A stretch of 64,000 nt of DNA, taken from positions 1 through 64,000 of the IMG/VR virus record IMGVR_UViG_3300005965_000002; one strand, written 5' to 3'. The position numbers and the translations under genes were made by a program. Below, in pieces: positions 2,611 through 57,955 of this stretch (within the stretch, counting starts at the first letter, position 1; the number at the start of each line of letters is the position of its first letter). The notes under the pieces are model-generated. The model saw only the letters and a program-made list of their open reading frames with translations, was not told the origin of the DNA and did no database searches.

Positions 2611-2924
2611 TTATATCTTACCGTGCTTGTTTTCCCATTCTTCCCGGAACCTTCTAGCGTACTTATTGACCCATTCTTCACAAGCTTCTTCATCTAGGTC
2701 TCTTCCTTCTTGTTCACTTCTGATCCATTTATACTTCTCGATTTCTTCTATTTCATCCTTCATAAACTTGAAATATTTGCTGTCAGGATTAATAGGAGAA
2801 GGAGGGAAGCTGTCGTCCTTACAGCATATACCAGTAGATCCCTTTAAACACGGCATCGATACTCCCCTGTATATTGGTGCCTGAGGGGGGACTTGAACCC
2901 CCACACCTTTCGGCACTAGATCCT

Positions 2925-3716
2925 CTTACTACTCCTAGTTTCCCAGGCCCTCTCGGTTGTAGTCTGGACTATATCTTCACCCTCAGTTTTACCTGTAGGG
3001 GCCTGACGTATAGTCTCTGAGGGGTCACTAAGACTTCCCTGCGGATTGCCGATTATTATCCATACAGATTTTTACTAATAATCTGCTAATAAGTTGGCAG
3101 ACTCATAGTACTGTAGGCTTTACGGGTTTCCCGCATATAGTCAGGTTTCACGCTCCCAATTACTTGAAAGGTGCTCAGGATATGAAGAACATTTCAAAAG
3201 AACTTCTTAAAAAATACTATCTACAGCAAAAACTTACACCCTATAAAATAGGAGAACTCTTTGGAGTTAACCACAAAACTGTAAGGAGCTACTTAAAAAA
3301 ATACCAAATACCCATGCGTACTGCCTCAGAATATAATTTTTTAGCCCGTAAGAGTCATACAAGACCCGACAAAAAAAAGTTACAAAGTAAATTATCCATT
3401 GCCGGGCATTCTGCTTTTCTTTGTGAAGGTTGGCATACAGAAAAAACAAATGCTTTTTATTTCTGTAATACAGATCCCGCCCTCATTCTTTTGGTCCTTA
3501 ATACGCTAAAAAGGATTTATCAAGTTAAAAGAATCGCTATACAAATAATAGCTAAAGAAAAAACAGGAACTAAAAAATTATTTGATATCTTTCCAGAAGC
3601 CTCCTTTATTGTTGAAAAAGATAGAAAAACTCCTATAGTTCGCCTTAGGTGTGGGGGTAAAAATCTTGCTAGAGAAGTAATAGAAAATTCTTACAGAATA
3701 GTTACTTCACTTTACT
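2925..3716 (-). ncRNA. group I intron (792 nt) in anticodon of tRNA-Leu(TAG)
   Basis: Inserted after U34, ends in G; core elements TCAGAGACTA and AAGATATAGTCC present. Confidence 0.9.
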
Positions 3717-3718
3717 AA
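3182..3718 (+). CDS. HTH + LAGLIDADG-like homing endonuclease encoded antisense inside the intron
   Basis: N-terminal HTH (LTPYKIGELFGVNHKTVRSYL), then AFLCEG...F.NTDP.LI motif; ATG at 3182 preferred over TTG at 3164. Confidence 0.65.
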   Translation: MKNISKELLKKYYLQQKLTPYKIGELFGVNHKTVRSYLKKYQIPMRTASEYNFLARKSHTRPDKKKLQSKLSIAGHSAFLCEGWHTEKTNAFYFCNTDPALILLVLNTLKRIYQVKRIAIQIIAKEKTGTKKLFDIFPEASFIVEKDRKTPIVRLRCGGKNLAREVIENSYRIVTSLY

Positions 3719-3802
3719 GTCTAGCGTGTCTGCCGTTCCACCACTCAGGCATGTAAACCTCGTTAACAATATACTTATCTGTTTTTACTATTTAAACTAC
3801 AG

Positions 3803-4550: not shown

Positions 4551-4575
4551 TTCGTTATTTGCTCCTAATAAAAAA

Positions 4576-4797
4576 AGCGGGGGGTGGGATTCGAACCCAC
4601 AGCGATTATCCCTAACCGGATTATTTTTCAGACGCTAGGGTTTCCGTTATTACGGTTCCTCATCATTGTTCGGGCTATAGCTAGCTCTGTTCAGGCCCGA
4701 ACCCAGGTAGAGGCGTGCAACCGGTCTCGCTTAACCCGGTCAGTTTGTTTTCTCCCGAACCTGGATGGGAGGCGTCTACCAATTCCGCCACCCCCGC
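4576..4797 (-). ncRNA. 222-nt tRNA-like RNA with ~140-nt structured insertion
   Basis: Acceptor GCGGGGG/CCCCCGC, Leu-type D arm, canonical T arm; several hairpins between anticodon-like arm and T arm. Confidence 0.75.
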
Positions 4798-4854
4798 TTA
4801 TTACTATAATATACCAATTCTATGGATGTTTTTAAAAAAATTATTAACAAATAA

Positions 4855-11731: not shown

Positions 11732-12406
11732 TAAAGAATGATTGTTTTGCTTTCTCTACAAGTTTCTTCCAAACGGTTGTACTCAGTTTTGGGTACTGTC
11801 TGTGTGCGGTACTGATGATATGAGGCGATACCCATTCCAAGAAGAAGGATGCTGAGGAGAGCAGCACTTATGAATAAGCCATCACCTGACGTGGCTGCTA
11901 AAGCTACTGAAAGAATGACAATAAAAAAGAGGAAAGAGATAACTATTACTAAAAAAATAGGTAGCATACTAGTCCTTTTTTGAGGCGTCGCGCTTATAGA
12001 TATCACATTTAGATATACCACATTTGCTGATGCCCTCTAGTGTTCTTTGTTCCAGGTCAGAATAGTCTTCCCACGGAATAATCGGGGTAAATGATTCTTT
12101 GGCTTTCTTCCCCATCTCAGTACGGCTTTGAATATTTTCTATGTTAGGCTTATCCAATGTTATTCCTTTACTTCTCCTGAAAATATGTGATTGTCGCATT
12201 TAACTACATCATCTTGACAGGTATCTTTTAGTACCGGATGATGCCCTCTAAATTCAGGATTGCTCATGCATTTAGGCCATTTATCAGTATGGTCACACAT
12301 AATGCATAAATTAGGTAATGTAGCTAATTCATTCATAAATACTTCCTGAAAAAATGGTACTCGGGACGAGATTCGAACTCGTACGGGGTTACCCCCAATG
12401 GATTTT

Positions 12407-13174
12407 CTTACTACTCTTGCTTTCACAAGCCGCTATAACGTTGTAGTCTGGACTATATCATCTCCTTAGTAAAACCTTAGGAGGGACGTGCATAGTCTCT
12501 GAACCTTCCCCATTTTAAAGGGGCTCGGCTGCTGATTACCCAATCTCTGATAGTTTTTTAACTTTCACACCCGCTGTTTTCAGCCATGTTGTAGTCATCT
12601 GAGCTATAAGGGCTTTCCAGCAATTCTCGTCCTGCTCACCTATTGATTTCTCAATAAGGGCTCTTTGATCCCTTATAAAAAAGTGAAGCCTGCCATGCTG
12701 CATCCTACTAATAATTATCATGTTACTTAAAGAGTTGTCTTTTATATCACCGTTAATATGATGAATAACTTCGTTATAAGAAAGTTTTCTCTTCAAAACT
12801 TGTTCAGCTATTACCCGGTGTATATCTTTAGAACTTCCTTTAAGTTTATTGTAATTACCAGTAGCATTGTTACCTATTTTTGAGACTTTTCTATAGCATT
12901 CTAAACAGTACTTTTGGTCTTTGTGGTTTAGCTTAATTTTTTTAGTGCATAAAACACAAAATCCCCAACCGTATCTATTTTTGTAAGCCGCTCCTCCTTT
13001 TTGAAGATAAAAATATTTACGTCTTTCTAGGTAACAAGGATTACAGTATCGTCTTCCTTTTGTTGGCGGGATCTTTTTACATTTAACACAAAGCCTCTCC
13101 ATAATAACTCCTTTTATTGGAAGGACCAATATTAGGAGATTATGGTGGACACAACGTGTCAAGTGTAAAAAACA
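12407..13174 (-). ncRNA. group I intron (768 nt) in anticodon of tRNA-Leu(TAA)
   Basis: After U34, ends ...AGTAGTAAG; TCAGAGACTA and GATATAGTCC core elements. Confidence 0.9.
12536..13102 (-). CDS. intron-encoded HNH homing endonuclease with zinc fingers
   Basis: HRVIAE..L.R.L...EVIHHING...DN...N motif; CxxC pairs; start at ATG 13102 with RBS GGAG. Confidence 0.85.
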   Translation of the reverse strand: MERLCVKCKKIPPTKGRRYCNPCYLERRKYFYLQKGGAAYKNRYGWGFCVLCTKKIKLNHKDQKYCLECYRKVSKIGNNATGNYNKLKGSSKDIHRVIAEQVLKRKLSYNEVIHHINGDIKDNSLSNMIIISRMQHGRLHFFIRDQRALIEKSIGEQDENCWKALIAQMTTTWLKTAGVKVKKLSEIG

Positions 13175-13268
13175 AAGTCCACAGTGTCTACCATTCCACC
13201 ACCCGAGCATGTCAAAGATCATCTCATATGAATATACTCCTTTGATTATTCTAATTAAAGTAAAAAAG

Positions 13269-16276: not shown

Positions 16277-17830
16277 TTACATTTTGTCCCTCCTTTTTTT
16301 CCATCTTTTCATAAGTTCTTTCTCCATATATTCTTTGGAAGGTTTCTTACCTTCTTTTTCAACGTATTCGTCCTCGATATCATTAACTATTCCAATAGCT
16401 ACTCCAACCTCAGGTCCAGCTTTTATATCGAGCAGTTCTTTTATCTCATTGCCGTTTAGGGGCGGCTTCTTCGATACAGGTACTTTTCTAGCTTGTTCTA
16501 TTTTTTCCCTTAGCATAGGAATTGAGTTACTAGGAGGTATTTTACCTAATTGATCTGCTTCAGCTAAATCGAGTAGAGAATCTACCAATTCGTCCCCAAT
16601 GCTTCTAATGAAACGACGTAATGCCTTTTCTGTAAGCTTTCCTTCTTCTAGATCTTTCGCCAAGGCATGGGGACGCATATGGTTTCTAACCATCTTTTTA
16701 ACCTTGTCGATATCTTTGACCTTAAAGTTCAGCCTCCTCATTATGCCCTCGGCTATTTCAGAGGCGGCAGCTTCATGGCCGTGGTGCTTTATTTCACCCT
16801 CCATCATAGATCTTGTTGCGGGCTTTCCAATGTCGTGCAGCAGAGCTGCCATCTGATTATTAAGACCAGGCTTTGCATTATCAAGCACCATAAGAGTGTG
16901 CGTCAATACATCACCTTCCTGGTGATGCCTCTCTGATTGCGTTTCCTCTTGTAGTGCTTTTACCTCGGGCAGTATGTGCTCAAGAAGACCGGTATCTCTC
17001 ATAAATTTAATCATAGAGGATAGTTTACCGTAATCAGCTATTTTTTCCATTTCCTCTTGGATACGCTCACTCGAAATGATATTAATTCGGTCTGCATTTC
17101 TTTTTACGGAGTCTATCATGTACTGTGGGATCTTCCAGTTGTATTTAGCTTTGAATCTCACAAGTCTGAGCATTCTCAATGGATCGCTCGTAAACATTTC
17201 ATCCAGGTTTACTTTCGGATGACCAGTAAGGTTTCCTTCTTCTATATCCTTCCGGCTACGCCCGGTAAGATCTTTTATCTCACCGGTAGATAAATCTTTT
17301 AAGAGCATGTTGACCGTAAAGTCACGCCTCATTATATCTTCCTCTACGGTGCCCGGCTCGGTTACTCTTTGCCTGGATTTAGGATCGGGAAAGGATTCCT
17401 TCTGGGAGTCAGCAAATTCTATTACTGCGCCCTGAGTCTGGTAGAGGTCACCTTTATAGTTAATGTTTTCCTTAAAGGTAATCTGCCATATCGGGTAAGA
17501 TTTTCCCATTTGATAAGGAGTCGATACAGATCCTGGATTCTCTTTGTTTAACGTAGTATTGATATATTTGGTCAGCTCTTCTGCGCCACCCCCCTTAGGG
17601 CTATCTACCATTATATCCAGGTCTTTGGCTTTTATTGAAGGATCTTTTTTTATTTTACTCAGATACTCATCGCGGACGTAACCGCCGACAGCATAAGCCT
17701 TACCTTTCCAAGGAGTGGTTGGTAGCCAATCTTTAAAAAGTCTTTCTACTTCTTTTTCTGCATCCGCAGCTACCTTTTTTAAAAGGTGGTTAGCTGCTTC
17801 TCTCAGTTTCGCTGCTGTCTTGAGTTCCAT
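16277..17830 (-). CDS. cca: CCA-adding tRNA nucleotidyltransferase with HD domain
   Basis: AVGGYVRD, DLD, RRDFTVN, DPLRMLR, SERI, LLHDIGKP motifs. Confidence 0.92.
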   Translation of the reverse strand: MELKTAAKLREAANHLLKKVAADAEKEVERLFKDWLPTTPWKGKAYAVGGYVRDEYLSKIKKDPSIKAKDLDIMVDSPKGGGAEELTKYINTTLNKENPGSVSTPYQMGKSYPIWQITFKENINYKGDLYQTQGAVIEFADSQKESFPDPKSRQRVTEPGTVEEDIMRRDFTVNMLLKDLSTGEIKDLTGRSRKDIEEGNLTGHPKVNLDEMFTSDPLRMLRLVRFKAKYNWKIPQYMIDSVKRNADRINIISSERIQEEMEKIADYGKLSSMIKFMRDTGLLEHILPEVKALQEETQSERHHQEGDVLTHTLMVLDNAKPGLNNQMAALLHDIGKPATRSMMEGEIKHHGHEAAASEIAEGIMRRLNFKVKDIDKVKKMVRNHMRPHALAKDLEEGKLTEKALRRFIRSIGDELVDSLLDLAEADQLGKIPPSNSIPMLREKIEQARKVPVSKKPPLNGNEIKELLDIKAGPEVGVAIGIVNDIEDEYVEKEGKKPSKEYMEKELMKRWKKRRDKM

Positions 17831-20387: not shown

Positions 20388-21443
20388 TTAAAAATCCTCT
20401 TTAGAGTTTTTTCTTAGTATCTCATAGATTTTTCGGCCCTGCTCTATGTTTTCCTTGGGCTCTTTTTTGCCTTCATTTTCTATCATTGATTCAATAAAGG
20501 CCTTTGTTTGTTCTTCATTGAGAGGAGGAGTACAGCGTATTCGTAGCCGTGGCTCGTCATCATATTCCAGAGTACCATAAATATCCTCATACTCCTTTAA
20601 AGCTTGCCGCTCAGCTTCATCAACAATCAAAGAAATGTTGCAATCATACAGTCCGGCACAGGAGAACGAACCTATCTCTAACAATCTCATTTCCCCTTCG
20701 GCAGTTTCACAGATGTCTATGACATACATAGGATCCGGATTGTAGCCCTCATTAGCTATTTCCTGTGCCTTTTTTAATGCAGCTTTATCTTTTGGGAAGT
20801 TAACGATATCGATTTCTCGGTATTTACCAGAGCTTATAGGTCCTATTCTTTCTTTGTACAAGCTGCCTGTAACTACTTTTTTATCTGATATAATAAATCG
20901 CCATTCCCTGATAATAACTTTAGGGGAGCTGATAATGACCAAAGAATGTGGCTCTGTGAATTCCTCTACCCAGTCCCAGTCGCTTTCAAAATGCTTCTCA
21001 TGGAAAACTTTTCCAGTAAAAGTTTTGTGCCCGGAACTCGGGCGCATAAAGAGAGCGTTTTCCTCACTACCAAAGGTCTTTTTAAGAAAACCCATTTGGC
21101 GAGGGACTTCTGCTCGGGGAAGCATTACGTAGTCGGAATTAAGATGGTGATGCCCTAAAGATGCATAATAACGAGAGCACTCGTACGCGATGCTGTTTAG
21201 CCAGGGACCTGGTACCCAGTAGTCCTCTTTTTGTAATTGTCTACAAAGATTAATAGATCCTTGCACAACAACGCAATCATGTCCTTTAAAAAAATGACTA
21301 TACTTCCCGCTTTTAAATGGGCGATATTTTACTACCTCGGTCTGTAGCCCCCGTCTACGGGTTTCTTCAGCTAATTTGTCAAACTTGTTATCCGCTTCGA
21401 AATCTTCTATTAACCATCTTGGTCTTACTTTAGCTATAGCCAT
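20388..21443 (-). CDS. ATP-grasp domain protein (DUF4343/R2K-like)
   Basis: FMRPSSGHKTFTG, EWRF, YVIDIC, EIGSFSCAGLY. Confidence 0.75.
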   Translation of the reverse strand: MAIAKVRPRWLIEDFEADNKFDKLAEETRRRGLQTEVVKYRPFKSGKYSHFFKGHDCVVVQGSINLCRQLQKEDYWVPGPWLNSIAYECSRYYASLGHHHLNSDYVMLPRAEVPRQMGFLKKTFGSEENALFMRPSSGHKTFTGKVFHEKHFESDWDWVEEFTEPHSLVIISSPKVIIREWRFIISDKKVVTGSLYKERIGPISSGKYREIDIVNFPKDKAALKKAQEIANEGYNPDPMYVIDICETAEGEMRLLEIGSFSCAGLYDCNISLIVDEAERQALKEYEDIYGTLEYDDEPRLRIRCTPPLNEEQTKAFIESMIENEGKKEPKENIEQGRKIYEILRKNSKEDF

Positions 21444-21612: not shown

Positions 21613-21699
21613 TGGCGGAGGGTGAGGGATTTGAACCCCCGTGCCCTTTCGGACGCTTGTTTAGCAAACAAGTGGTTTTACCGATTCACCCAACCCTCC
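21613..21699 (-). tRNA. tRNA-Ser(GCT)
   Basis: CTTGT-TTGCTAA-ACAAG; long variable arm; CCA. Confidence 0.93.
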
Positions 21700-21725: not shown

Positions 21726-21996
21726 TTAGACCAAGCAAATGGATATGAATGTGCTTGGGGGTAGAACTTCTAACATTAATTTTCTTCCGCCCTGATTGAG
21801 GGAATGGACATAAACTTCTGGCGGACATCTATCTAAATTCCTTGATAGCCATTCTGCTACCTCGTATCCGGTACCCTCTCCGGAAGGGACATAGACTTTA
21901 CCGTCTAAGTCGTGATCAAGATATAAAAGATCCCACAAATTTGCGACGAAATAGCTTCATCCTATCCAAATCATCTTCGAGTATTAAAACATTCAT
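21726..21996 (-). pseudogene. cyclic-phosphate-processing receiver-like domain, frameshifted or internally deleted
   Basis: MNVLILEDD..R in one frame; LDHDL..GTGYEVA.WL..HSLN in another. Confidence 0.6.
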
Positions 21997-22502
21997 GAGC
22001 ATGCTTTCATAATTAAATAGCTATCAATTTTTCTTTTAATGTTGTCTATATGTTTGTCCAGACTCCAAGAAATATCTTCACCTAATTCTGGGTGGATAAG
22101 ATTTAGCTGAATAAACACATCTTTTTCTCTTTTATACCCGGGTTCTACGCCGACTGCAATCTCATGTAGATAGTCAGCTTTGTATTGTCTAAGGGCTACC
22201 TGTCTGCCGAGTTCATACATGCAAATAGGCTGGTCGCTAGGGGCATCGCTAAACCACATTGAAAATATGTCACATTGGTTTAGTGCGTGGAATTCCCAAG
22301 TAATTTGTTCCTCAGAAGCGTTTGGGTCATCGATAGGAAAGTTTTCTCTCCGAGGATTTAAAATGATACAATCAGTACCTTCTAATCCTTTGATTACTTC
22401 ATCCTGCCAATTTGGGCAGTTTGTTATACCTCCGGCTAAAAACACGGAAGGTAATCCTTGTACCCCCAACGTAAACGGACGAGGAGCTGTGTACAGTATC
22501 AT
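21993..22502 (-). CDS. nucleoside 2-deoxyribosyltransferase-like protein
   Basis: VFLAGGI..CPNWQ, LNPRR, QITWE, ELG motifs. Confidence 0.8.
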   Translation of the reverse strand: MILYTAPRPFTLGVQGLPSVFLAGGITNCPNWQDEVIKGLEGTDCIILNPRRENFPIDDPNASEEQITWEFHALNQCDIFSMWFSDAPSDQPICMYELGRQVALRQYKADYLHEIAVGVEPGYKREKDVFIQLNLIHPELGEDISWSLDKHIDNIKRKIDSYLIMKACS

Positions 22503-23616
22503 TTTATCTCCTGGAAAATCCCATGGTTTTATTTTTATTTTTTATCTGATTTAGAGTGTACTTCAGCTTTATAATTGCATTTGCGTAAACAGAAAAAGCT
22601 GTAATCAGGTTAGCAGTCAGCATTAAAATATAGGCTGCTTTCGCAAATGCTTTTTTTGTTCTCATATTGAGCATTACTGTTGGACCTCAAACACCTCTTC
22701 ACAGAGATGGTAGCTGTCTCTTTTTTCTTTTGCGATGGCTCTACATTTATCGCATTCGCCATCAGGCTTCCTATGCACGCAAACTACATTCTCATAAAGA
22801 GGATCCCAGGTTACGTAAACCTTTTCTTTATCTTTATTGTGTGAGTAGGATTTCTGAGCCTCAAGTACCCAACCGATATTTAAATTAAAAAGATGCTCAA
22901 GAGAATCGTACTCTTTATCTGGTATATGTCCCTTTAGGGGTATTAACCGACCAACACAGCTAGTCCAGTATCTACCCTCCCCCAAGGATTGTAAATCATA
23001 ATAGTAGTCATCTTTATCCGTTTTGAAATCTATCAAACGTACTACCGTCGTTCCGTCTATCAGCAGATCACCTTTATGTTTTTCAACAAACTGGATTAAA
23101 TCAGTTTTAGAAGATTGAGGGAAGTATGAATCGCAATCTTTGAGGTTGGTTTCTTCCTCGGCGCATTCAGATTTGGGGAGAGGAGTTACTTCGCCGGTTA
23201 GATATTCAAACTTATATCTGCAGGATTCACAAGGACCCTTCATACGTCATTCCTTTTCCATCCGTAGTTAAAAATAAACCAGTCTGCAGCTTTTTTTAGT
23301 TCTGTTTTTCTTCTCGATGATGGGAAGCGAAGCATCTCAAGTCGAGCTTCTTTGGTTTTGTACCAATAATCTACAAGCCAGTCATGAAATGAGATCTCTT
23401 CTTTTTTATTCCATGTGTGTGAGCAGTACCATTGGGGGTCAAAGAAATCAACATCTTCATATTTGACATTTACTCTGCTACACATTTCTTTCAGTGCCGC
23501 TTTTACATGGGTTCCAAACTCTCTTTTTTGAGGTTTATCTTGAGTGTCCATAGATATCTCCTTTTCAAAGCACAGAATAATGTATTATTTGGAGATCCGT
23601 ATTTAAAGAAAATTAG

Positions 23617-23688
23617 AGAAGAAGGCAGGAATCGAACCCACGCCTTCTCCCGGACAGGGAGTGTTCAACCAGCTTAAACTACTTCTTC
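23617..23688 (-). ncRNA. atypical tRNA-Asp(GTC)-like RNA
   Basis: Acceptor GAAGAAG/CTTCTTC, normal T arm, anticodon arm CTCCC-TGTCC-GGGAG (5-nt loop). Confidence 0.6.
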
Positions 23689-23872
23689 TCTAACATAGAG
23701 GCGGCTAAGGCCTTCAGGTGGCTACAAGGTTTTTCCTTGTTATCCATATTTATCACGCAACCACAAACTGTGCAGATTACGTTTGATACCTTAAGTGTGT
23801 GGGTTTCTACTCGTTCGAAGGCTTTTTTAATTTCTTCTACATCAATAGTCATATTATATTCTCCTAAAAAAA

Positions 23873-23947
23873 TGGCGGGCCCACGGAGAATTGAACTCCG
23901 GTTACGAGATTGACAGTCTCGCGTCCTAGCCACTAGACGATGAGCCC
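23873..23947 (-). tRNA. tRNA-Asp(GTC)
   Basis: CGAGA-CTGTCAA-TCTCG; CCA. Confidence 0.93.
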
Positions 23948-23953
23948 TTAAAC

Positions 23954-24031
23954 TGGTAGGGACGCCCGGGATTGAACCGGGGACAACGCGGATTTTCAGT
24001 CCGCTGCTCTACCAAACTGAGCTAAGTGGCC
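23954..24031 (-). tRNA. tRNA-Phe(GAA) with mismatched (chimeric) acceptor stem
   Basis: GCGGA-CTGAAAA-TCCGC; 5' GGCCACT versus 3' CGTCCCT has 3 mismatches. Confidence 0.75.
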
Positions 24032-24081
24032 TTAAATTTATTTTAAAGCCACTAAAGTCAGAATCTCCCATCATTGCCTCC

Positions 24082-24304
24082 AAAAAGAGAAACCCCGCTG
24101 AACTTTCGCTCGGCGGGGTTTCTCTTGAATTCACTTTTATAAAAAGTTATCTTCGAGACCCCCGCCCGGGCATAATATCATCGCCACTATCAAAATCGAT
24201 AGCGCTCATGCTGATGATAAAAATGCTGGTTACGATAGTCATTGAAGATAAACTCCTATTCATTGGTTCGTTTCTAATATACCCTTTTGTTACAAGGAAT
24301 TCAA
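24082..24304 (-). promoter_or_regulatory. attenuator 2: promoter TTGAAT-N17-TATATT, leader ORF 24242-24147, antiterminator, terminator 24126-24082
   Basis: Leader MTIVTSIFIISMSAIDFDSGDDIMPGRGSRR (RBS AGGAG); GGCGGGGGTCTC pairs with GAGAAACCCCGCC. Confidence 0.85.
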
Positions 24305-24392
24305 ATACTTTTTTCAGAAAGTTTAGGAACCCATTAATAATCTTATAATATTTTCTTGTTATAAGATATTTTCTGTAAAGAGGGGCTACATA

Positions 24393-26543
24393 ATGGATTG
24401 GGTAGGATTAAGTTTATTTGGATATAGAGAAGCTGCAAGAAAATTTAAAAAACCTGCAGATCTTCAGTCTATACTAAAGACCATCAATATCACCTCAGAA
24501 CAATTTGAAGAGATTCGAAAAGAGGTGGCTCAAAAAGATACAGCCGGGTTAAAAGTAACTGCTCAGACTTCTGGGGCTATTGAATTATATGATCCGATCA
24601 TCACCTACCTTACTTGGATAGTACTACACGACAAGTTTAAATCTAAAAAAGAAAAGCCTGAATATCCTACTCACCAAGAATATGATTTCTTTCATGATTT
24701 ATTAGTTGCTGGTAAATTTGATGATATAAGAAAAATCATATCTAATGATAATGTTCCTCGTAACCAGCTACAGCAATATATACAGAAATTTCAGTCTTCC
24801 AATAAGTCAGATAATAAGCTCACCAAAGAAGATTTGAAAGTTTTAAATAATAAAAAAGAAGTAGTTGATTTAGGGGGAGGGTGGTCTTGGATAACCCTAG
24901 TAGATGATCAAGGCAACATAAAAGGTGGTTCTACGGTACTTACTAAAATACTAGGTCACTGTGGTAACGGTGAAGGTTTACCTGGAGATAAAATGTATCT
25001 ATTAAGTAATAAAACCATGGGACTTATACCTACTATCAAAGCTACAGTTATTGTTGATGGTGAAGGAAAAATCAGGGAGTCTAAGGCTTCTTTCAATAGA
25101 AAGATAAACATTAATAAATATGGGGGTGCCTTCTTAAAACTTCTTGAGCAACCTTTCGTAAAAGGCCTAGACGATAGTGGTGCTTACATGGCTGATTCAA
25201 ATCTCCATATGAGTGACTTTTCTGGTACTCCTTTTGAAGAACAAGCCAAGGCTCTTATAGAGAAAAAACCTAATCTTATGAATAATGATTTTGATCAAGT
25301 TATTACTAAATATAAAGATGAAGTATCAAGTCTCTCCCCAGAAGATAAAAAAGACGAATTACGGAAATTATTAGAAGATGGTCATATAAATTTAGTACAA
25401 GCTCGCGCCTTGAATGGCGGAAAATTTCCCTTTACAGACGACGAGTTGGTCGGTATGATTGATGGGGGATTAGATATAGGAAAGATAATTTCTGCCGGTA
25501 ATAGCTTATTTAGCCTTAAAGTGCAGCAAGCTTTAGCAAAAAAAGATCCTTCAAAAAACATCTCTTACATGCTTTACATGGCAGCTACTTTAAATAACAG
25601 TCCTATAGATAAAAAAATTCTTATAGAGGGTCTTAATTCCGCAAAAAAATTTAAAATGAATAGCTTTGCAGGTGATGTAGGAGATGAGACAAAAAATAAA
25701 TTAACTTCTTACTTGAAAAAGAATACTGATTTATTGTCCGCTTATCTTAAGAAAGATCCCTCGGCTATAGATTATTTCCCTGAAGACCAGCGAATGCATA
25801 TATTTAATAAAATGCCCGAGGCGTTCGCCGAAGTGTTTAAAAAAGTTCCTTCGGCTATACGTTATTTCCCTGAAGATAAAAGGATGGATATCTTTAACCA
25901 AATGCCCGAGGCGTTCGCCGAAGGGTTTTATGAAGACCCCTCGTCTATTGGTTATTTCCCTGAAGATAAAAGGATGGATATCTTTAACCGAATGCCCGAG
26001 GTGTTCGCCGAAGGGTTTAAAGAAGTTCCTTGGTCTATAAGTTATTTCCCTGAAGATAAAAAGATGGATATCTTTAACCGAATGCCCGAGGCGTTCGCCG
26101 AAGGGTTTAAAAAAATTCCTTCGGCTATAGGTTATTTCCCTGAAGACCAACACGGTTATATAAAGGAAACTATAAGAAAAATAAATGAGAAGAATAGAAC
26201 AAAGGAAGCGGCTACTATGAACAAGATATCTACCCTGTTAGACACAATAGCCAACCGATTGGAAGCAAAAGGCCTAATTAAGGAAGCTTTCAGCTTAGAT
26301 ACAATAGCAAATACTCTTGAAAAATGTGCTGCTATAGATCCATATGCGGCTACCTTGATAGCCCATGCAAAAGGTAATATGAATCAAATTCAGCAAGCTG
26401 CTCAAGATGTTAAGCAACTAGGGAAGAAAGGTATAGAATCGGTAGGCCCTGTAGAAGAAGTATTAGAAAAGCATAACTTAACTTTAAAGTCCAAGGATGA
26501 GGCTGCTTTAGAAAATCTTTGTGCTAATCTTTTAAAGATCTAA
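24393..26543 (+). CDS. large hypothetical protein with 30-aa tandem repeats and the shared motif near the C-terminus
   Basis: 716-aa ORF; preceded by TAATAATCTTATAAT. Confidence 0.75.
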   Translation: MDWVGLSLFGYREAARKFKKPADLQSILKTINITSEQFEEIRKEVAQKDTAGLKVTAQTSGAIELYDPIITYLTWIVLHDKFKSKKEKPEYPTHQEYDFFHDLLVAGKFDDIRKIISNDNVPRNQLQQYIQKFQSSNKSDNKLTKEDLKVLNNKKEVVDLGGGWSWITLVDDQGNIKGGSTVLTKILGHCGNGEGLPGDKMYLLSNKTMGLIPTIKATVIVDGEGKIRESKASFNRKININKYGGAFLKLLEQPFVKGLDDSGAYMADSNLHMSDFSGTPFEEQAKALIEKKPNLMNNDFDQVITKYKDEVSSLSPEDKKDELRKLLEDGHINLVQARALNGGKFPFTDDELVGMIDGGLDIGKIISAGNSLFSLKVQQALAKKDPSKNISYMLYMAATLNNSPIDKKILIEGLNSAKKFKMNSFAGDVGDETKNKLTSYLKKNTDLLSAYLKKDPSAIDYFPEDQRMHIFNKMPEAFAEVFKKVPSAIRYFPEDKRMDIFNQMPEAFAEGFYEDPSSIGYFPEDKRMDIFNRMPEVFAEGFKEVPWSISYFPEDKKMDIFNRMPEAFAEGFKKIPSAIGYFPEDQHGYIKETIRKINEKNRTKEAATMNKISTLLDTIANRLEAKGLIKEAFSLDTIANTLEKCAAIDPYAATLIAHAKGNMNQIQQAAQDVKQLGKKGIESVGPVEEVLEKHNLTLKSKDEAALENLCANLLKI
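25758..26150 (+). repeat. 90-nt (30-aa) tandem repeat, 4 full copies plus 1 partial
   Basis: TATTTCCCTGAAGA recurs at 25773, 25863, 25953, 26043 and 26133. Confidence 0.95.
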
Positions 26544-30807: not shown

Positions 30808-30968
30808 TTTAATACTCTACTTTATCCGTCTCAAAGGATATACCAGTTTTTTTGACGATAACAGTTACCTGTATATGCTTTAAAGGGATTGGTAAAGGCG
30901 GTAAATAAATGTCTTTTCTATACGGATCATATCTTTTAATCGAAGGAACGAATGGTAACAGTTTTAAG

Positions 30969-31041
30969 CGCCCCCGAAAGGATTCGAACCTTTGACTGAC
31001 TGGTTTTAGGGACCACTCCTCTACCACTGAGGTACGGGGGC
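30969..31041 (-). tRNA. putative amber-suppressor tRNA (anticodon CTA), Trp-like anticodon arm
   Basis: TGGT-CCCTAAA-ACCA; perfect acceptor GCCCCCG/CGGGGGC; G73; C33. Confidence 0.7.
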
Positions 31042-31081
31042 TGATAGTCATTAATATACCTTTGTGATATATTTATTTTAA

Positions 31082-38326: not shown

Positions 38327-38404
38327 TGGTCGGGACGCCCGGATTTGAACCGGGGACCCCAAGTCCCCCAGACTTGTGCGCTGACCAGGCTGCGCCACGT
38401 CCCG
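38327..38404 (-). tRNA. tRNA-Pro(GGG)
   Basis: Loop CTGGGGG; CCA. Confidence 0.92.
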
Positions 38405-57508: not shown

Positions 57509-57922
57509 ATGCATAGAATATCAGAATATTTAGACTCTCTTTCTAATATATTAGAGAGCAAAGGATTTTTAAAGCAGGCTGAGCATATTGATATGCTTAC
57601 TAACACAGTAGATGGGTTATGGCTCTGCTCATGCTGTCAGAAGCCCACGGTAAATAGTATAGAAGATCGTTACATGGTAAACGATGATATATGGAGAGAG
57701 CTGGGTTTCCCGGGCCAAGTAGATGGCATTCCTGATGACTACTTTTTATGTTGGAGCTGTCTTATTATGGCAGTTTCGAAAAAGTTAGGTAGAGGGCTTT
57801 CATCTGCCGATTTTGCTCAATATATGCAGTACCCTATAAACGTAAATAATCCGAATATAATTGATCTTATGAGGGGAGAAATGGACCAGGTAGGACTCGA
57901 ACCTACGACTGCTCGATTATGA
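57509..57922 (+). CDS. hypothetical protein with the shared N-terminal motif
   Basis: RBS AAGGAG; LDSLSNILESKGFLKQAEHIDML. Confidence 0.7.
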   Translation: MHRISEYLDSLSNILESKGFLKQAEHIDMLTNTVDGLWLCSCCQKPTVNSIEDRYMVNDDIWRELGFPGQVDGIPDDYFLCWSCLIMAVSKKLGRGLSSADFAQYMQYPINVNNPNIIDLMRGEMDQVGLEPTTARL

Positions 57923-57955
57923 GTCGAGAACTCTAACCAACTGAGTTACTGGTCC
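57882..57955 (-). tRNA. tRNA with CAT anticodon (Ile2 likely, Met possible)
   Basis: CTCGA-CTCATAA-TCGAG; no CCA; its leader contains ATA twice. Confidence 0.88.

Follow-up and report, generated by a model that had tools for sequence, protein, structure and literature searches.

A putative leader-peptide attenuator upstream of tRNA genes in a salt-lake jumbo phage, with leader codons that predicted a lost tRNA-Ile

Leader-peptide attenuation has been a textbook mechanism for the control of amino-acid operons since the 1970s. In the classical enterobacterial systems, which include the multivalent leaders of thr (Thr and Ile codons), ilvGMEDA and ilvBN (Ile/Leu/Val), as well as his, leu, trp and pheA, a promoter-proximal short ORF with a Shine-Dalgarno (SD) sequence carries clusters of codons for the relevant amino acids, and is followed by mutually exclusive antiterminator and terminator hairpins and a U-run. 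The nearest logical analogue of the system described here is probably the pheST attenuator of E. coli with its pheM leader, where a leader peptide with codons for one amino acid controls a gene needed to decode those same codons (the related pheA/pheL mechanism is described in PMC3082878). However, pheST encodes an aminoacyl-tRNA synthetase, not tRNAs, and responds to a single amino acid; the E. coli tRNA-Phe genes pheV and pheU showed no leader ORF or attenuator when examined. T-box riboswitches also couple antitermination to the state of a specific tRNA, but appear to bind uncharged tRNA directly, without a leader peptide. Phage tRNA arrays have been discussed as codon supplements or as counter-measures to tRNA-targeting defences (PMC10264068), but demand-dependent, codon-matched attenuation of such arrays was not found in the literature searched.

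The locus described here lies on the minus strand of a 64,000-nt window (positions 1 to 64,000 of IMG/VR record IMGVR_UViG_3300005965_000002) from the 258,580-bp genome of a jumbo phage. The unit, referred to as L2, spans 24304-24082. It begins with a sigma-70-type promoter (−35 TTGAAT, 24304-24299; 17-nt spacer; −10 TATATT, 24281-24276), with the −10 inside a motif, AAAGGGTATATTAG (24287-24274), that occurs in front of all five leader units in the window and also before two leaderless tRNAs at 31060 and 4815. An SD sequence, AGGAG (24257-24253), lies 10 nt before the ATG of a 31-codon ORF that extends from 24242 to a TAA at 24149-24147 and encodes MTIVTSIFIISMSAIDFDSGDDIMPGRGSRR. The ORF is followed by an intrinsic terminator, comprising segment 3 (24124-24108), a loop, segment 4 (24103-24087) and a T5 run (24086-24082). 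At −28.3 kcal/mol, this is the strongest minus-strand terminator of the window, and the first tRNA starts 54 nt further on. An internal hairpin of the leader (24204-24183, around CTATCGATTTTGATAG) is predicted in every fold of the free RNA and is possibly a pause or segment-1 element, although it does not sequester the antiterminator strand.

The tRNAs downstream are tRNA-Phe(gaa) (23954-24033), tRNA-Asp(GTC) (23873-23947; Rfam score 61.9 bits), which is the first intact tRNA of the block, a second, atypical tRNA-Asp(GTC)-like gene with C at position 37 (23616-23688; 43.1 bits), and tRNA-Ser(GCT) (21613-21699), the last tRNA of the block. No predicted minus-strand terminator lies between tRNA-Ser and the attenuator. 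Between the terminator and the first tRNA is a second mini-ORF of unknown function (24081-24009), with an SD sequence, GGAGG (24081-24077), and an ATG at 24074, encoding MMGDSDFSGFKINLRPLSSVW followed by a stop. This mini-ORF runs into the tRNA, and its AGTGGC pairs with the 5' acceptor strand of the tRNA. Its core, [DE]SDFSGF[KR], is kept with synonymous changes in the two relatives described below, and the pairing covaries (AGTGGC/GCCACT, AGCGGC/GCCGCT, AGTGGT/GCCACT).

The codons of the leader match the tRNAs of the block more often than expected by chance. As stated in the original prediction, the ORF contains GAT x4, TTT x2, four AGC/AGT codons (AGC x3, AGT x1), six ATC/ATT codons (ATC x4, ATT x2) and two internal ATG codons; the Ile, Ser-AGY, Phe, Asp and Met codons lie in codons 3-24 (24236-24171). 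Ten of 30 leader codons are read by the tRNAs of the present block (4.2 expected, P=0.006). No tRNA-Ile was found anywhere in the genome, with or without an intron search, and Ile is the only amino acid without a tRNA. If Ile-GAT and Met-CAT are added to the block, 18 of 30 codons match (5.8 expected, P=1.2e-6). All six Ile codons are ATY, although the genome prefers ATA (46% of its Ile codons).

Additional evidence for a codon-matched mechanism comes from four sister units on the minus strand of the window. Unit L4 (59725-59601) has the leader MIATTTIRIEGREGEGEGTIMS (59725-57), a terminator at 59626-01 and a block of Glu, Glu, Gly, Met, Gly, Thr-cgt, Arg-cct and Arg-tct tRNAs, with 12/21 codons matched (P=1e-4). 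Unit L5 (48569-48436) has the leader MLMIVKKVKVVVKRRKGSHRGEFRLFI, a terminator at 48459-36 and a block of Lys, Lys, Arg-acg, Val and Arg-ccg tRNAs (11/26, P=2e-4). Unit L1 (41262-41128) has the leader MFIMNQNNPNPQQPRTEGSLGGILLA, a terminator at 41154-28 and a block of Asn, Gln, Asn, Gln, Pro and Pro tRNAs, with 10 consecutive matched codons (P=5e-4). Unit L3 (14656-14481) has the leader MKSTSSTLQSLHTVLTSAAWTLLYSYLCANTIVAGRNF, a terminator at 14505-14481 and a block of Cys, Leu x5, Tyr, Ala x3, Trp, His, Thr x2 and Ser tRNAs (24/37, P=2e-5). Over all five units, 67 of 139 leader codons are read by tRNAs of the unit's own block, against 26 expected; none of 200,000 simulations exceeded 47, and the true leader-block assignment is the single best of 120 permutations. 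The match holds at the codon level: Arg is AGG/AGA in L4, whose block has cct and tct, but CGC/CGT in L5, whose block has acg; Ser is AGY in L2 (gct) but TCN in L3 (gga); and the five different Leu codons in L3 are matched by five tRNA-Leu genes. Nonetheless, some leader codons are unmatched, for example Ile x4 in L4 and NYNKYLHY in the relative L077.

The predicted RNA structures are consistent with the classical attenuator layout. Segment 2, the antiterminator strand (24172-24154; core GGCGGGG at 24166-24160 plus TCTC at 24158-24155), lies in the last codons of the leader, 6 nt before the stop codon. Its predicted duplex with the 5' arm of the terminator is −23.3 kcal/mol, which was reached by 0 of 300 shuffles. 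In 9 of 9 units examined, five in the window and four in relatives, the best pairing partner of the terminator's 5' arm lies between −28 and +8 nt of the leader stop (dG −13 to −23, z −1.8 to −5.4). In truncated-transcript folds, used to mimic co-transcriptional folding, the 2:3 pairing forms unless a ribosome sits at codon 24 or later, or at the stop; with a ribosome mask, it forms for stalls at codons 11-22 and is absent with the ribosome at the stop. Other observations count against the model. At equilibrium, the full-length RNA always prefers the terminator, also with ribosome masks, such that the model depends on co-transcriptional kinetics. Moreover, the truncated transcript also forms 2:3 without any ribosome, unlike the trp paradigm, and a convincing 1:2 element is predicted only for L3.

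Comparison with relatives provides further support. The closest relative found, contig L077, is syntenic and encodes a 78% identical R2K protein; a second contig, L079, is from a more distant relative. Both keep a homologous Ile/Ser/Phe/Asp/Met-rich L2 leader with a conserved SD sequence and ATG, of 36 codons in L077 (16/35 matched, P=4e-4) and 33 codons in L079 (19/32, P=7e-7), with the stop at the same distance from segment 2. The frame is kept open despite a diverged interior, and GCGGGGGTCTCGAA is invariant in three relatives, third codon positions included. L079 carries one compensatory G-C to A-T change in the terminator. Evidence from covariation within L2 is limited, since only three homologues of this unit exist, most paired positions are invariant, each helix has a single compensatory change, and L079 has an A·C mismatch at the antiterminator position that covaries between the window and L077. 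Homologues of L3 are also present in both relatives. In L079, the L3 unit has a different terminator arm (GCCCCGCC) and a correspondingly different segment 2 (GGTGGGGT), against CCCCTTCCAG/CTGGGAGG in the window and L077.

The same design was detected in two more distant phages, L099 (13/30 codons matched against 2.5 expected, P=3.5e-7) and L110, but is absent from 51 unrelated phage tRNA loci retrieved with the tRNA-Phe anticodon arm. Two more distant relatives, L080 and L093, have tRNAs but no such leaders, and contigs of P0002, P0003, P0005, P0012 and P0013 do not reach, or do not contain, the tRNA block. Nucleotide and translated searches of GenBank phages with the locus and its 716-aa neighbour gave only generic tRNA hits. 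Searches of IMG/VR with the 716-aa and 189-aa neighbours and with TerL gave nothing useful (one 21-kb contig with a 60% identical TerL), and a search with the 57-aa intra-block protein found only itself. The leader/terminator pattern found nothing in IMG/VR; in JGI metagenomes it found the window's own contig, one identical contig and three GC-rich chance hits. The Rfam His_leader model (RF00514) aligns full-length at 24085-24220 but below threshold (27.7 against 49 bits, E=0.036), indicating architectural resemblance rather than membership. No T-box or other Rfam cis-regulatory family reached the gathering threshold in the window, and no T-box hit was found at E<=10 in 23400-24500.

The original prediction, that the Ile-rich leader without a visible tRNA-Ile reflects a tRNA-Ile(GAT) once present in the block, is supported by the relatives. 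In L077, the leader and terminator are followed by Phe, Met, Met, Ile-GAT, Asp and Asp', the last being the counterpart, at 2394-2464, of the atypical Asp-like gene. In L079, the order is Phe, Asp, Met, Met, Ile-GAT, Phe and Ser-gct. The tRNA-Ser(GCT) sits next to the R2K gene in both. Relatives with an Ile-rich leader but no tRNA-Ile were not found; the opposite was observed. The tRNA-Phe of the window is a chimera (23954-24031), of which the 5' part (24031-23985) is tRNA-Phe(GAA), matching the second tRNA-Phe of L079 best (39/47), and the 3' part (23984-23954; T-arm, acceptor 3' strand and CCA) is 31/31 identical to the 3' end of the L077 tRNA-Ile. Only 4 of 7 acceptor positions pair (5' GGCCACT against 3' CGTCCCT), and the Rfam tRNA score is only 42.6 bits, against 53-71 for most others. 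The junction lies in a shared T-arm repeat. A 266-bp deletion between the near-identical T-arms of tRNA-Phe and tRNA-Ile removed the 3' end of Phe, two tRNA-Met(CAT) genes and most of tRNA-Ile(GAT), such that the Ile and Met codons of the leader match tRNA genes that are gone.

Taken together, these data make it likely that 24304-24082 is a ribosome-mediated transcription attenuator that gates a phage operon of tRNA genes and RNA-repair-type genes, although the evidence is computational, without transcript, ribosome-profiling or reporter data, and translation of the leader, regulated termination and the biological trigger are inferred. In the proposed mechanism, host RNA polymerase initiates at the TTGAAT-N17-TATATT promoter and a ribosome translates the leader close behind it. 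If the ATC/ATT, AGC/AGT, TTT, GAT and ATG codons are decoded quickly, the ribosome reaches the TAA and covers segment 2, so segments 3 and 4 fold into the terminator and transcription stops at the T-run. If decoding stalls because those tRNAs are scarce, through host tRNA decay or cleavage by host anticodon nucleases, segment 2 stays free and pairs with segment 3, the terminator cannot form, and the polymerase reads into the tRNA genes that decode the same codons. The result would be negative feedback on tRNA supply, and the four sister units would control the other tRNA blocks in the same way. Since the host is unknown, transcription-translation coupling and SD use are assumed. In contrast to the enterobacterial attenuators, the regulated genes are tRNA genes rather than genes for biosynthetic enzymes, the regulatory codons are matched at the anticodon level to the tRNAs downstream, such that the loop would sense tRNA supply rather than amino-acid supply, and segment 2 lies inside the last codons of the ORF.

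Other explanations for the leader are less well supported. The most plausible, though still unlikely, is that the hairpin is a constitutive or protein-controlled terminator, overridden for example by a phage antiterminator or a timing factor, with no sensing role for the ORF. The preference for the terminator at equilibrium is consistent with this model, as is the temporal antitermination that jumbo phages may often use, and there are no expression data. However, it does not explain the codon-tRNA matching, the constant position of a terminator-complementary segment at the leader's stop codon in 9 of 9 units, or the concerted change of segment 2 and the terminator arm in L3 of L079. It is very unlikely that the ORF is an ordinary small phage protein gene with its own terminator and a coincidental codon resemblance to the downstream tRNAs. 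While its N-terminal half (MTIVTSIFIISMSAI) is hydrophobic, as in a membrane peptide, and small ORFs are common between phage tRNA genes, the match recurs in five units. Moreover, the N-terminal half is not conserved in L077, whereas its composition stays matched to the block, and the only strictly conserved stretch is the part that pairs with the terminator.

Similarly, it is very unlikely that the Ile codons are background from an AT-rich genome and a hydrophobic peptide, with no tRNA-Ile ever present and the odd tRNA-Phe merely degenerate or mispredicted. In favour of this reading, Ile makes up 7.2% of the phage's codons, 6 of 30 gives only P=0.018 on its own, and Ile codons also occur in L4, L5 and L1, whose blocks have no Ile tRNA. 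Nonetheless, this possibility is contradicted by the tRNA-Ile(GAT) genes of both relatives and by the 31-nt identity, and 17 of the 18 Ile codons in the three L2 leaders are ATY, the codons read by GAT. An assembly artefact, with a collapse across the 14-22-nt T-arm repeat (GTCCCCGGTTCAAT) that flanks the missing segment, is also very unlikely, even though the genome is a metagenome contig (Ga0081527_100007). The same junction appears in a second JGI contig (L088) and in Logan contigs from two other samples that span it without an indel (X2 record 6, 22858-24727; X3 record 13, 23956-24123), and a 14-nt repeat is far shorter than the usual assembly k-mers. One caveat is that the three samples look related (hypersaline lake, 2017) and all are short-read assemblies. 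A roughly 90%-identical relative follows the window through the Ile-derived part (to 23985), with about 725 nt of its contig beyond that point not aligning.

A broader reading, judged slightly more likely than not, is that this virus runs a codon-resolved feedback network on its own tRNA supply, in which five multivalent attenuators split an array of 40 tRNA genes covering 19 amino acids into demand-controlled operons, each opened only when ribosomes stall on the codons that its tRNAs read. The same switches would release tRNA-repair enzymes (CCA-adding enzyme, cREC/R2K module), and the system would then act as a sensor of, and response to, host tRNA depletion or anticodon-nuclease defence. 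Leader codon content would also record the tRNA content of a block; the rule that leader composition predicts block content already predicted a gene loss correctly here, and it detects similar units in distant jumbo phages (L099 and L110). The units are compact, at about 220 nt, and could serve as natural, modular sensors of decoding capacity for chosen codons. If the device works as proposed, it would be a self-regulating tRNA supply system, would show that phages measure translational demand, and would offer a direct link between phage tRNA arrays and tRNA-targeting host defences or host shut-off.

The sequence forms the first 64 kb of a single 258,580-bp contig (GC 38.6%), JGI metagenome contig Ga0081527_100007, and the runs that hold it are hypersaline-lake metagenomes. 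The contig encodes a large terminase, a head-maturation protease, helicases and similar proteins, and is therefore a jumbo phage. All of its tRNA genes lie on the minus strand of the window. ARAGORN finds 37 of them, and 40 when introns are allowed, covering 19 amino acids plus an amber suppressor, with Ile as the only amino acid lacking a tRNA. Default tRNA scans miss three genes: tRNA-Leu(taa) (12355-13208, minus strand) and tRNA-Leu(tag) (2875-3750, minus strand) are interrupted by introns of 768 and 792 nt that contain Rfam group I intron matches (12433-12677 and 2944-3239), and a tRNA-like gene with a 147-nt insert (4575-4798, minus strand) lies behind its own GGTATATTA promoter (4815-4807). 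The only tRNA with anticodon CAT (57882-57955, minus strand) has an Ile-like D-loop and anticodon stem when compared with the Ile tRNAs of the relatives L077 and L079 described below, and could be tRNA-Ile2 (lysidine, reading ATA) rather than tRNA-Met.

On the minus strand, a sigma-70-type promoter (TTGAAT 24304-24299, 17-nt spacer, TATATT 24281-24276) is followed by AGGAG (24257-24253), an ORF of 31 codons running from ATG 24242 to TAA 24149-24147 (MTIVTSIFIISMSAIDFDSGDDIMPGRGSRR), a 38-nt hairpin at 24124-24087 that is the strongest minus-strand terminator of the window (-28.3 kcal/mol), and a run of five T (24086-24082). The whole leader folds far better than shuffled sequences (z = -5.65). 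tRNA-Phe(gaa) begins 54 nt further on, followed by tRNA-Asp(gtc), a 57-codon ORF, a second Asp-like tRNA and several protein genes; tRNA-Ser(gct) follows at 21699-21613, with no predicted terminator in between. The second Asp-like gene (23616-23688, minus strand) is an atypical tRNA-Asp(gtc)-like gene with C at position 37 and a 4-bp anticodon stem that scores only 43 bits, yet it is conserved in L077 (2394-2464). Divergently transcribed from this locus is a 716-aa ORF (24393-26543, plus strand) with four to five tandem ~23-aa repeats (YFPEDKRMDIFNxMPEAFAEGF), which has no Pfam hit and for which no homologue was found in the GenBank phage or IMG/VR searches. The leader codon counts of the original prediction (four GAT, two TTT, four AGC/AGT, six ATC/ATT and two internal ATG) are all correct.

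This unit is one of five. The motif GGTATATTA(G), with an upstream TTGAA, marks seven minus-strand promoters in the tRNA region, five of which are followed by an SD, a 22-38-codon ORF, a strong terminator and then tRNAs. Unit L4 (59601-59725, minus strand; ATG 59725) encodes the leader MIATTTIRIEGREGEGEGTIMS and precedes Glu, Glu, Gly, Met, Gly, Thr-cgt, Arg-cct and Arg-tct tRNAs. Unit L5 (48436-48569, minus strand; ATG 48569) encodes MLMIVKKVKVVVKRRKGSHRGEFRLFI and precedes Lys, Lys, Arg-acg, Val and Arg-ccg, while unit L1 (41128-41262, minus strand; ATG 41262) encodes MFIMNQNNPNPQQPRTEGSLGGILLA and precedes Asn, Gln, Asn, Gln, Pro and Pro. Unit L2, with its ATG at 24242, is the unit described here, with the block Phe (chimera), Asp, Asp-like and Ser-gct. 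Unit L3 (14481-14656, minus strand; ATG 14656) encodes MKSTSSTLQSLHTVLTSAAWTLLYSYLCANTIVAGRNF and precedes Cys, five Leu, Tyr, three Ala, Trp, His, two Thr and Ser. By contrast, an amber-suppressor-type tRNA (anticodon cta, labelled Pyl by ARAGORN; 30968-31041, minus strand) has the same promoter (31060-31052) but no leader or terminator; three relatives (L080-L082) carry a tta suppressor instead.

The correspondence between leader codons and downstream tRNAs was evaluated using standard wobble rules and the codon usage of the phage itself. Of 139 leader codons, 67 are read by tRNAs of the unit's own block, against 26 expected, and none of 200,000 simulations exceeded 47. Each unit is individually significant (P from 2e-5 to 6e-3), and the true leader-to-block assignment scores 67, against 52 for the second best of 120 permutations. 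The match is at the level of codons, not only of amino acids: Arg is AGG/AGA in L4 (tRNAs cct, tct) but CGC/CGT in L5 (acg), Ser is AGC/AGT in L2 (gct) but TCN in L3 (gga), and L3 uses five different Leu codons where its block holds five tRNA-Leu species, two of which are found only when introns are allowed. L4 also contains four unmatched Ile codons (ATT, ATC, ATA x2) and three Thr ACY codons. By the same logic, these might mark further lost or unrecognized tRNAs, and the two ATA codons lie upstream of the possible tRNA-Ile2.

Additional evidence for attenuation came from alternative RNA structures. In all five window units, and in the four homologous units of relatives, the part of the leader that pairs best with the 5' arm of the terminator is a G-rich stretch at the very end of the leader ORF, between -28 and +8 nt of the stop codon, with energies of -13 to -23 kcal/mol (z -1.8 to -5.4 against shuffles). 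For L2 this segment 2 is 24172-24154; its core GGCGGGG (24166-24160) pairs with CCCCGCC (24118-24112), and TCTC pairs with GAGA, with an energy of -23.3 kcal/mol that 0 of 300 shuffles reach. When the transcript was folded as it exists before the 3' arm of the terminator is made, the antiterminator formed with a ribosome stalled anywhere from codon 11 to codon 22, and was lost when the A site reached codon 24 or the stop codon, because segment 2 is then inside the ribosome. Two weaknesses remain. At equilibrium the full-length RNA always prefers the terminator, so the switch must be kinetic, as in the classical systems. The antiterminator is also predicted in the absence of any ribosome, and a clear 1:2 helix is seen only in L3. 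The Rfam His-leader model aligns end to end at 27.7 bits, below its threshold of 49, indicating a resemblance of architecture, not membership.

While GenBank phages and IMG/VR hold nothing close, homologues of the R2K ATP-grasp protein of block 2 (20388-21443) led to relatives in assembled public reads. L077 is an 11.6-kb contig, syntenic with the window, whose R2K protein is 78% identical. It carries the same promoter, SD, terminator and leader 3' end, and its leader, MISNYNKYLHYSFIEGDSIDFDRFMDDIMPQRGSRR, is followed by tRNA-Phe, Met, Met, Ile(GAT), Asp and Asp'. L079, a 45-kb contig with 63% identity, has the leader MTSVTSISIISSIAISFIDSMFDDIVLKRGSRI, the terminator, and then Phe, Asp, Met, Met, Ile(GAT), Phe and Ser-gct. 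These leaders match their blocks, at 16/35 (P=4e-4) for L077 and 19/32 (P=7e-7) for L079, and the window leader scores 18/30 (P=1.2e-6) if Ile-GAT and Met-CAT are added to its block. In the three leaders, 17 of 18 Ile codons are ATC or ATT, the codons read by anticodon GAT, although the window genome itself prefers ATA.

Both relatives also keep an L3 unit. In L079 that unit has a different terminator (arm GCCCCGCC) and a correspondingly different segment 2 (GGTGGGGT), where the window and L077 have CCCCTTCCAG and CTGGGAGG, such that the pairing is kept while both strands change. Within L2, the paired cores are invariant, third codon positions of CGG GGG TCT CGA included, while the rest of the leader and the spacer diverge. 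Each helix shows one compensatory change, and L079 has an A·C mismatch at the antiterminator position that covaries between the window and L077. A second mini-ORF with a strong SD (GGAGG) sits between the terminator and tRNA-Phe and runs into the tRNA (24009-24081, minus strand; L077 1913-1960; L079 7197-7240). Its core [DE]SDFSGF[KR], which again uses Asp, Ser and Phe codons, is conserved in three relatives with mostly synonymous changes, and its AGYGGY pairs with the 5' acceptor strand of tRNA-Phe and covaries with it (AGTGGC/GCCACT, AGCGGC/GCCGCT, AGTGGT/GCCACT). This mini-ORF may be a second, translation-dependent control of tRNA folding or processing.

Evidence for the loss of a tRNA-Ile came from the "tRNA-Phe" of the window, which has a defective acceptor stem (4 of 7 pairs) and a low Rfam score. 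Alignment with the tRNAs of the relatives showed that its first 47 nt are Phe-like (39/47 to L079 Phe2), while its last 31 nt, GTCCCCGGTTCAATCCCGGGCGTCCCTACCA, are 31/31 identical to the 3' end of the L077 tRNA-Ile. In L077 the T-arms of Phe and Ile share GTCCCCGGTTCAAT, at 2003 and 2269, and a deletion of 266 bp between these repeats yields exactly the chimera found in the window, removing the Phe 3' end, both Met genes and two thirds of Ile. A short-word BLAST of the relatives' Ile and Met tRNAs against the whole genome finds only this 32-nt remnant, plus a weaker 31-nt (90%) match in the T-arm of tRNA-Pro at 38327-38357.

The junction is not an assembly accident of one data set. A second JGI contig (L088) is identical across it, and Logan contigs from two other samples also span it without an indel (X2 record 6, 22858-24727; X3 record 13, 23956-24123). 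A roughly 90%-identical relative in a 2022 sample matches up to 23985, the Ile-derived part; about 725 nt of its contig beyond that point did not align and could not be read, and an intact tRNA-Ile there is only inferred. The original prediction that Ile-GAT, and perhaps also Met, genes would lie next to Phe is thus borne out, and the deletion and chimera account can be held with very high confidence.

The same design was found twice among 20 IMG/VR loci with distant R2K homologues, in jumbo-phage contigs L099 and L110, whose R2K proteins are only 48% and 34% identical to that of the window. L099 (1240-1500) has the leader MRITTNNTFSNSNCTCNFCFSNSRNELVEFA, with segment 2 CTGGTGGAG against terminator arm CTCCACCGG, followed by Phe, Ser-gct, Cys and Thr-cgt; 13/30 codons match against 2.5 expected (P=3.5e-7). 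L110 (6440-6615) has the leader MRRHSIHTTSIISSTDGTGLLV before an Ile/Leu/Ser/Thr/His array. By contrast, 51 unrelated phage tRNA-Phe loci gave no such unit, and neither did two relatives at 58-61% R2K identity.

The mechanism class is that of the classical leader-peptide attenuator. The systems nearest in logic appear to be the multivalent thr and ilv leaders and the pheST leader, which probably controls a translation component; the pheL mechanism has been summarized (PMC3082878). The differences lie in the regulated genes, which are tRNAs, the anticodon-level matching, the viral setting, and details of the fold. The E. coli tRNA-Phe genes pheV and pheU have no leader, and no T-box or other Rfam regulatory family reaches threshold. 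No report of attenuators in front of phage tRNA genes was found in full-text searches of an incomplete literature collection, such that earlier work may exist.

Taken as a whole, the data confirm the observation and support its interpretation as an attenuator with a missing tRNA-Ile, and it is likely, although less certain than the deletion, that the unit is a working ribosome-dependent attenuator of a tRNA operon. The system is compact, repeated, predictive and directly testable. In the inferred mechanism, a ribosome that translates the leader without delay reaches the stop codon, hides segment 2 and lets the terminator form, whereas a ribosome stalled on Ile, Ser-AGY, Phe, Asp or Met codons leaves segment 2 free to pair with segment 3, and the polymerase reads into the tRNA genes. 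Block 2 also carries a CCA-adding enzyme with an HD domain, the R2K-clade ATP-grasp protein, a cREC_REC (cyclic-phosphate processing receiver) protein and a nucleoside 2-deoxyribosyltransferase-like protein (16277-17830, 20388-21443, 21726-21938 and 21993-22502, all minus strand), an RNA-repair-type gene set under the same predicted attenuator. The CCA-adding enzyme, R2K and cREC_REC proteins fit a response to tRNA damage, for example by host anticodon nucleases, and phage tRNAs have been proposed as a counter to such defences (PMC10264068), although this link is speculative. Because the tRNAs gated are those that read the stalling codons, the loop would be a negative feedback on decoding capacity. 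In the lineage of the window itself, the Ile, Met and probably Phe inputs are now orphaned, with the leader still asking for tRNAs that the operon no longer supplies.
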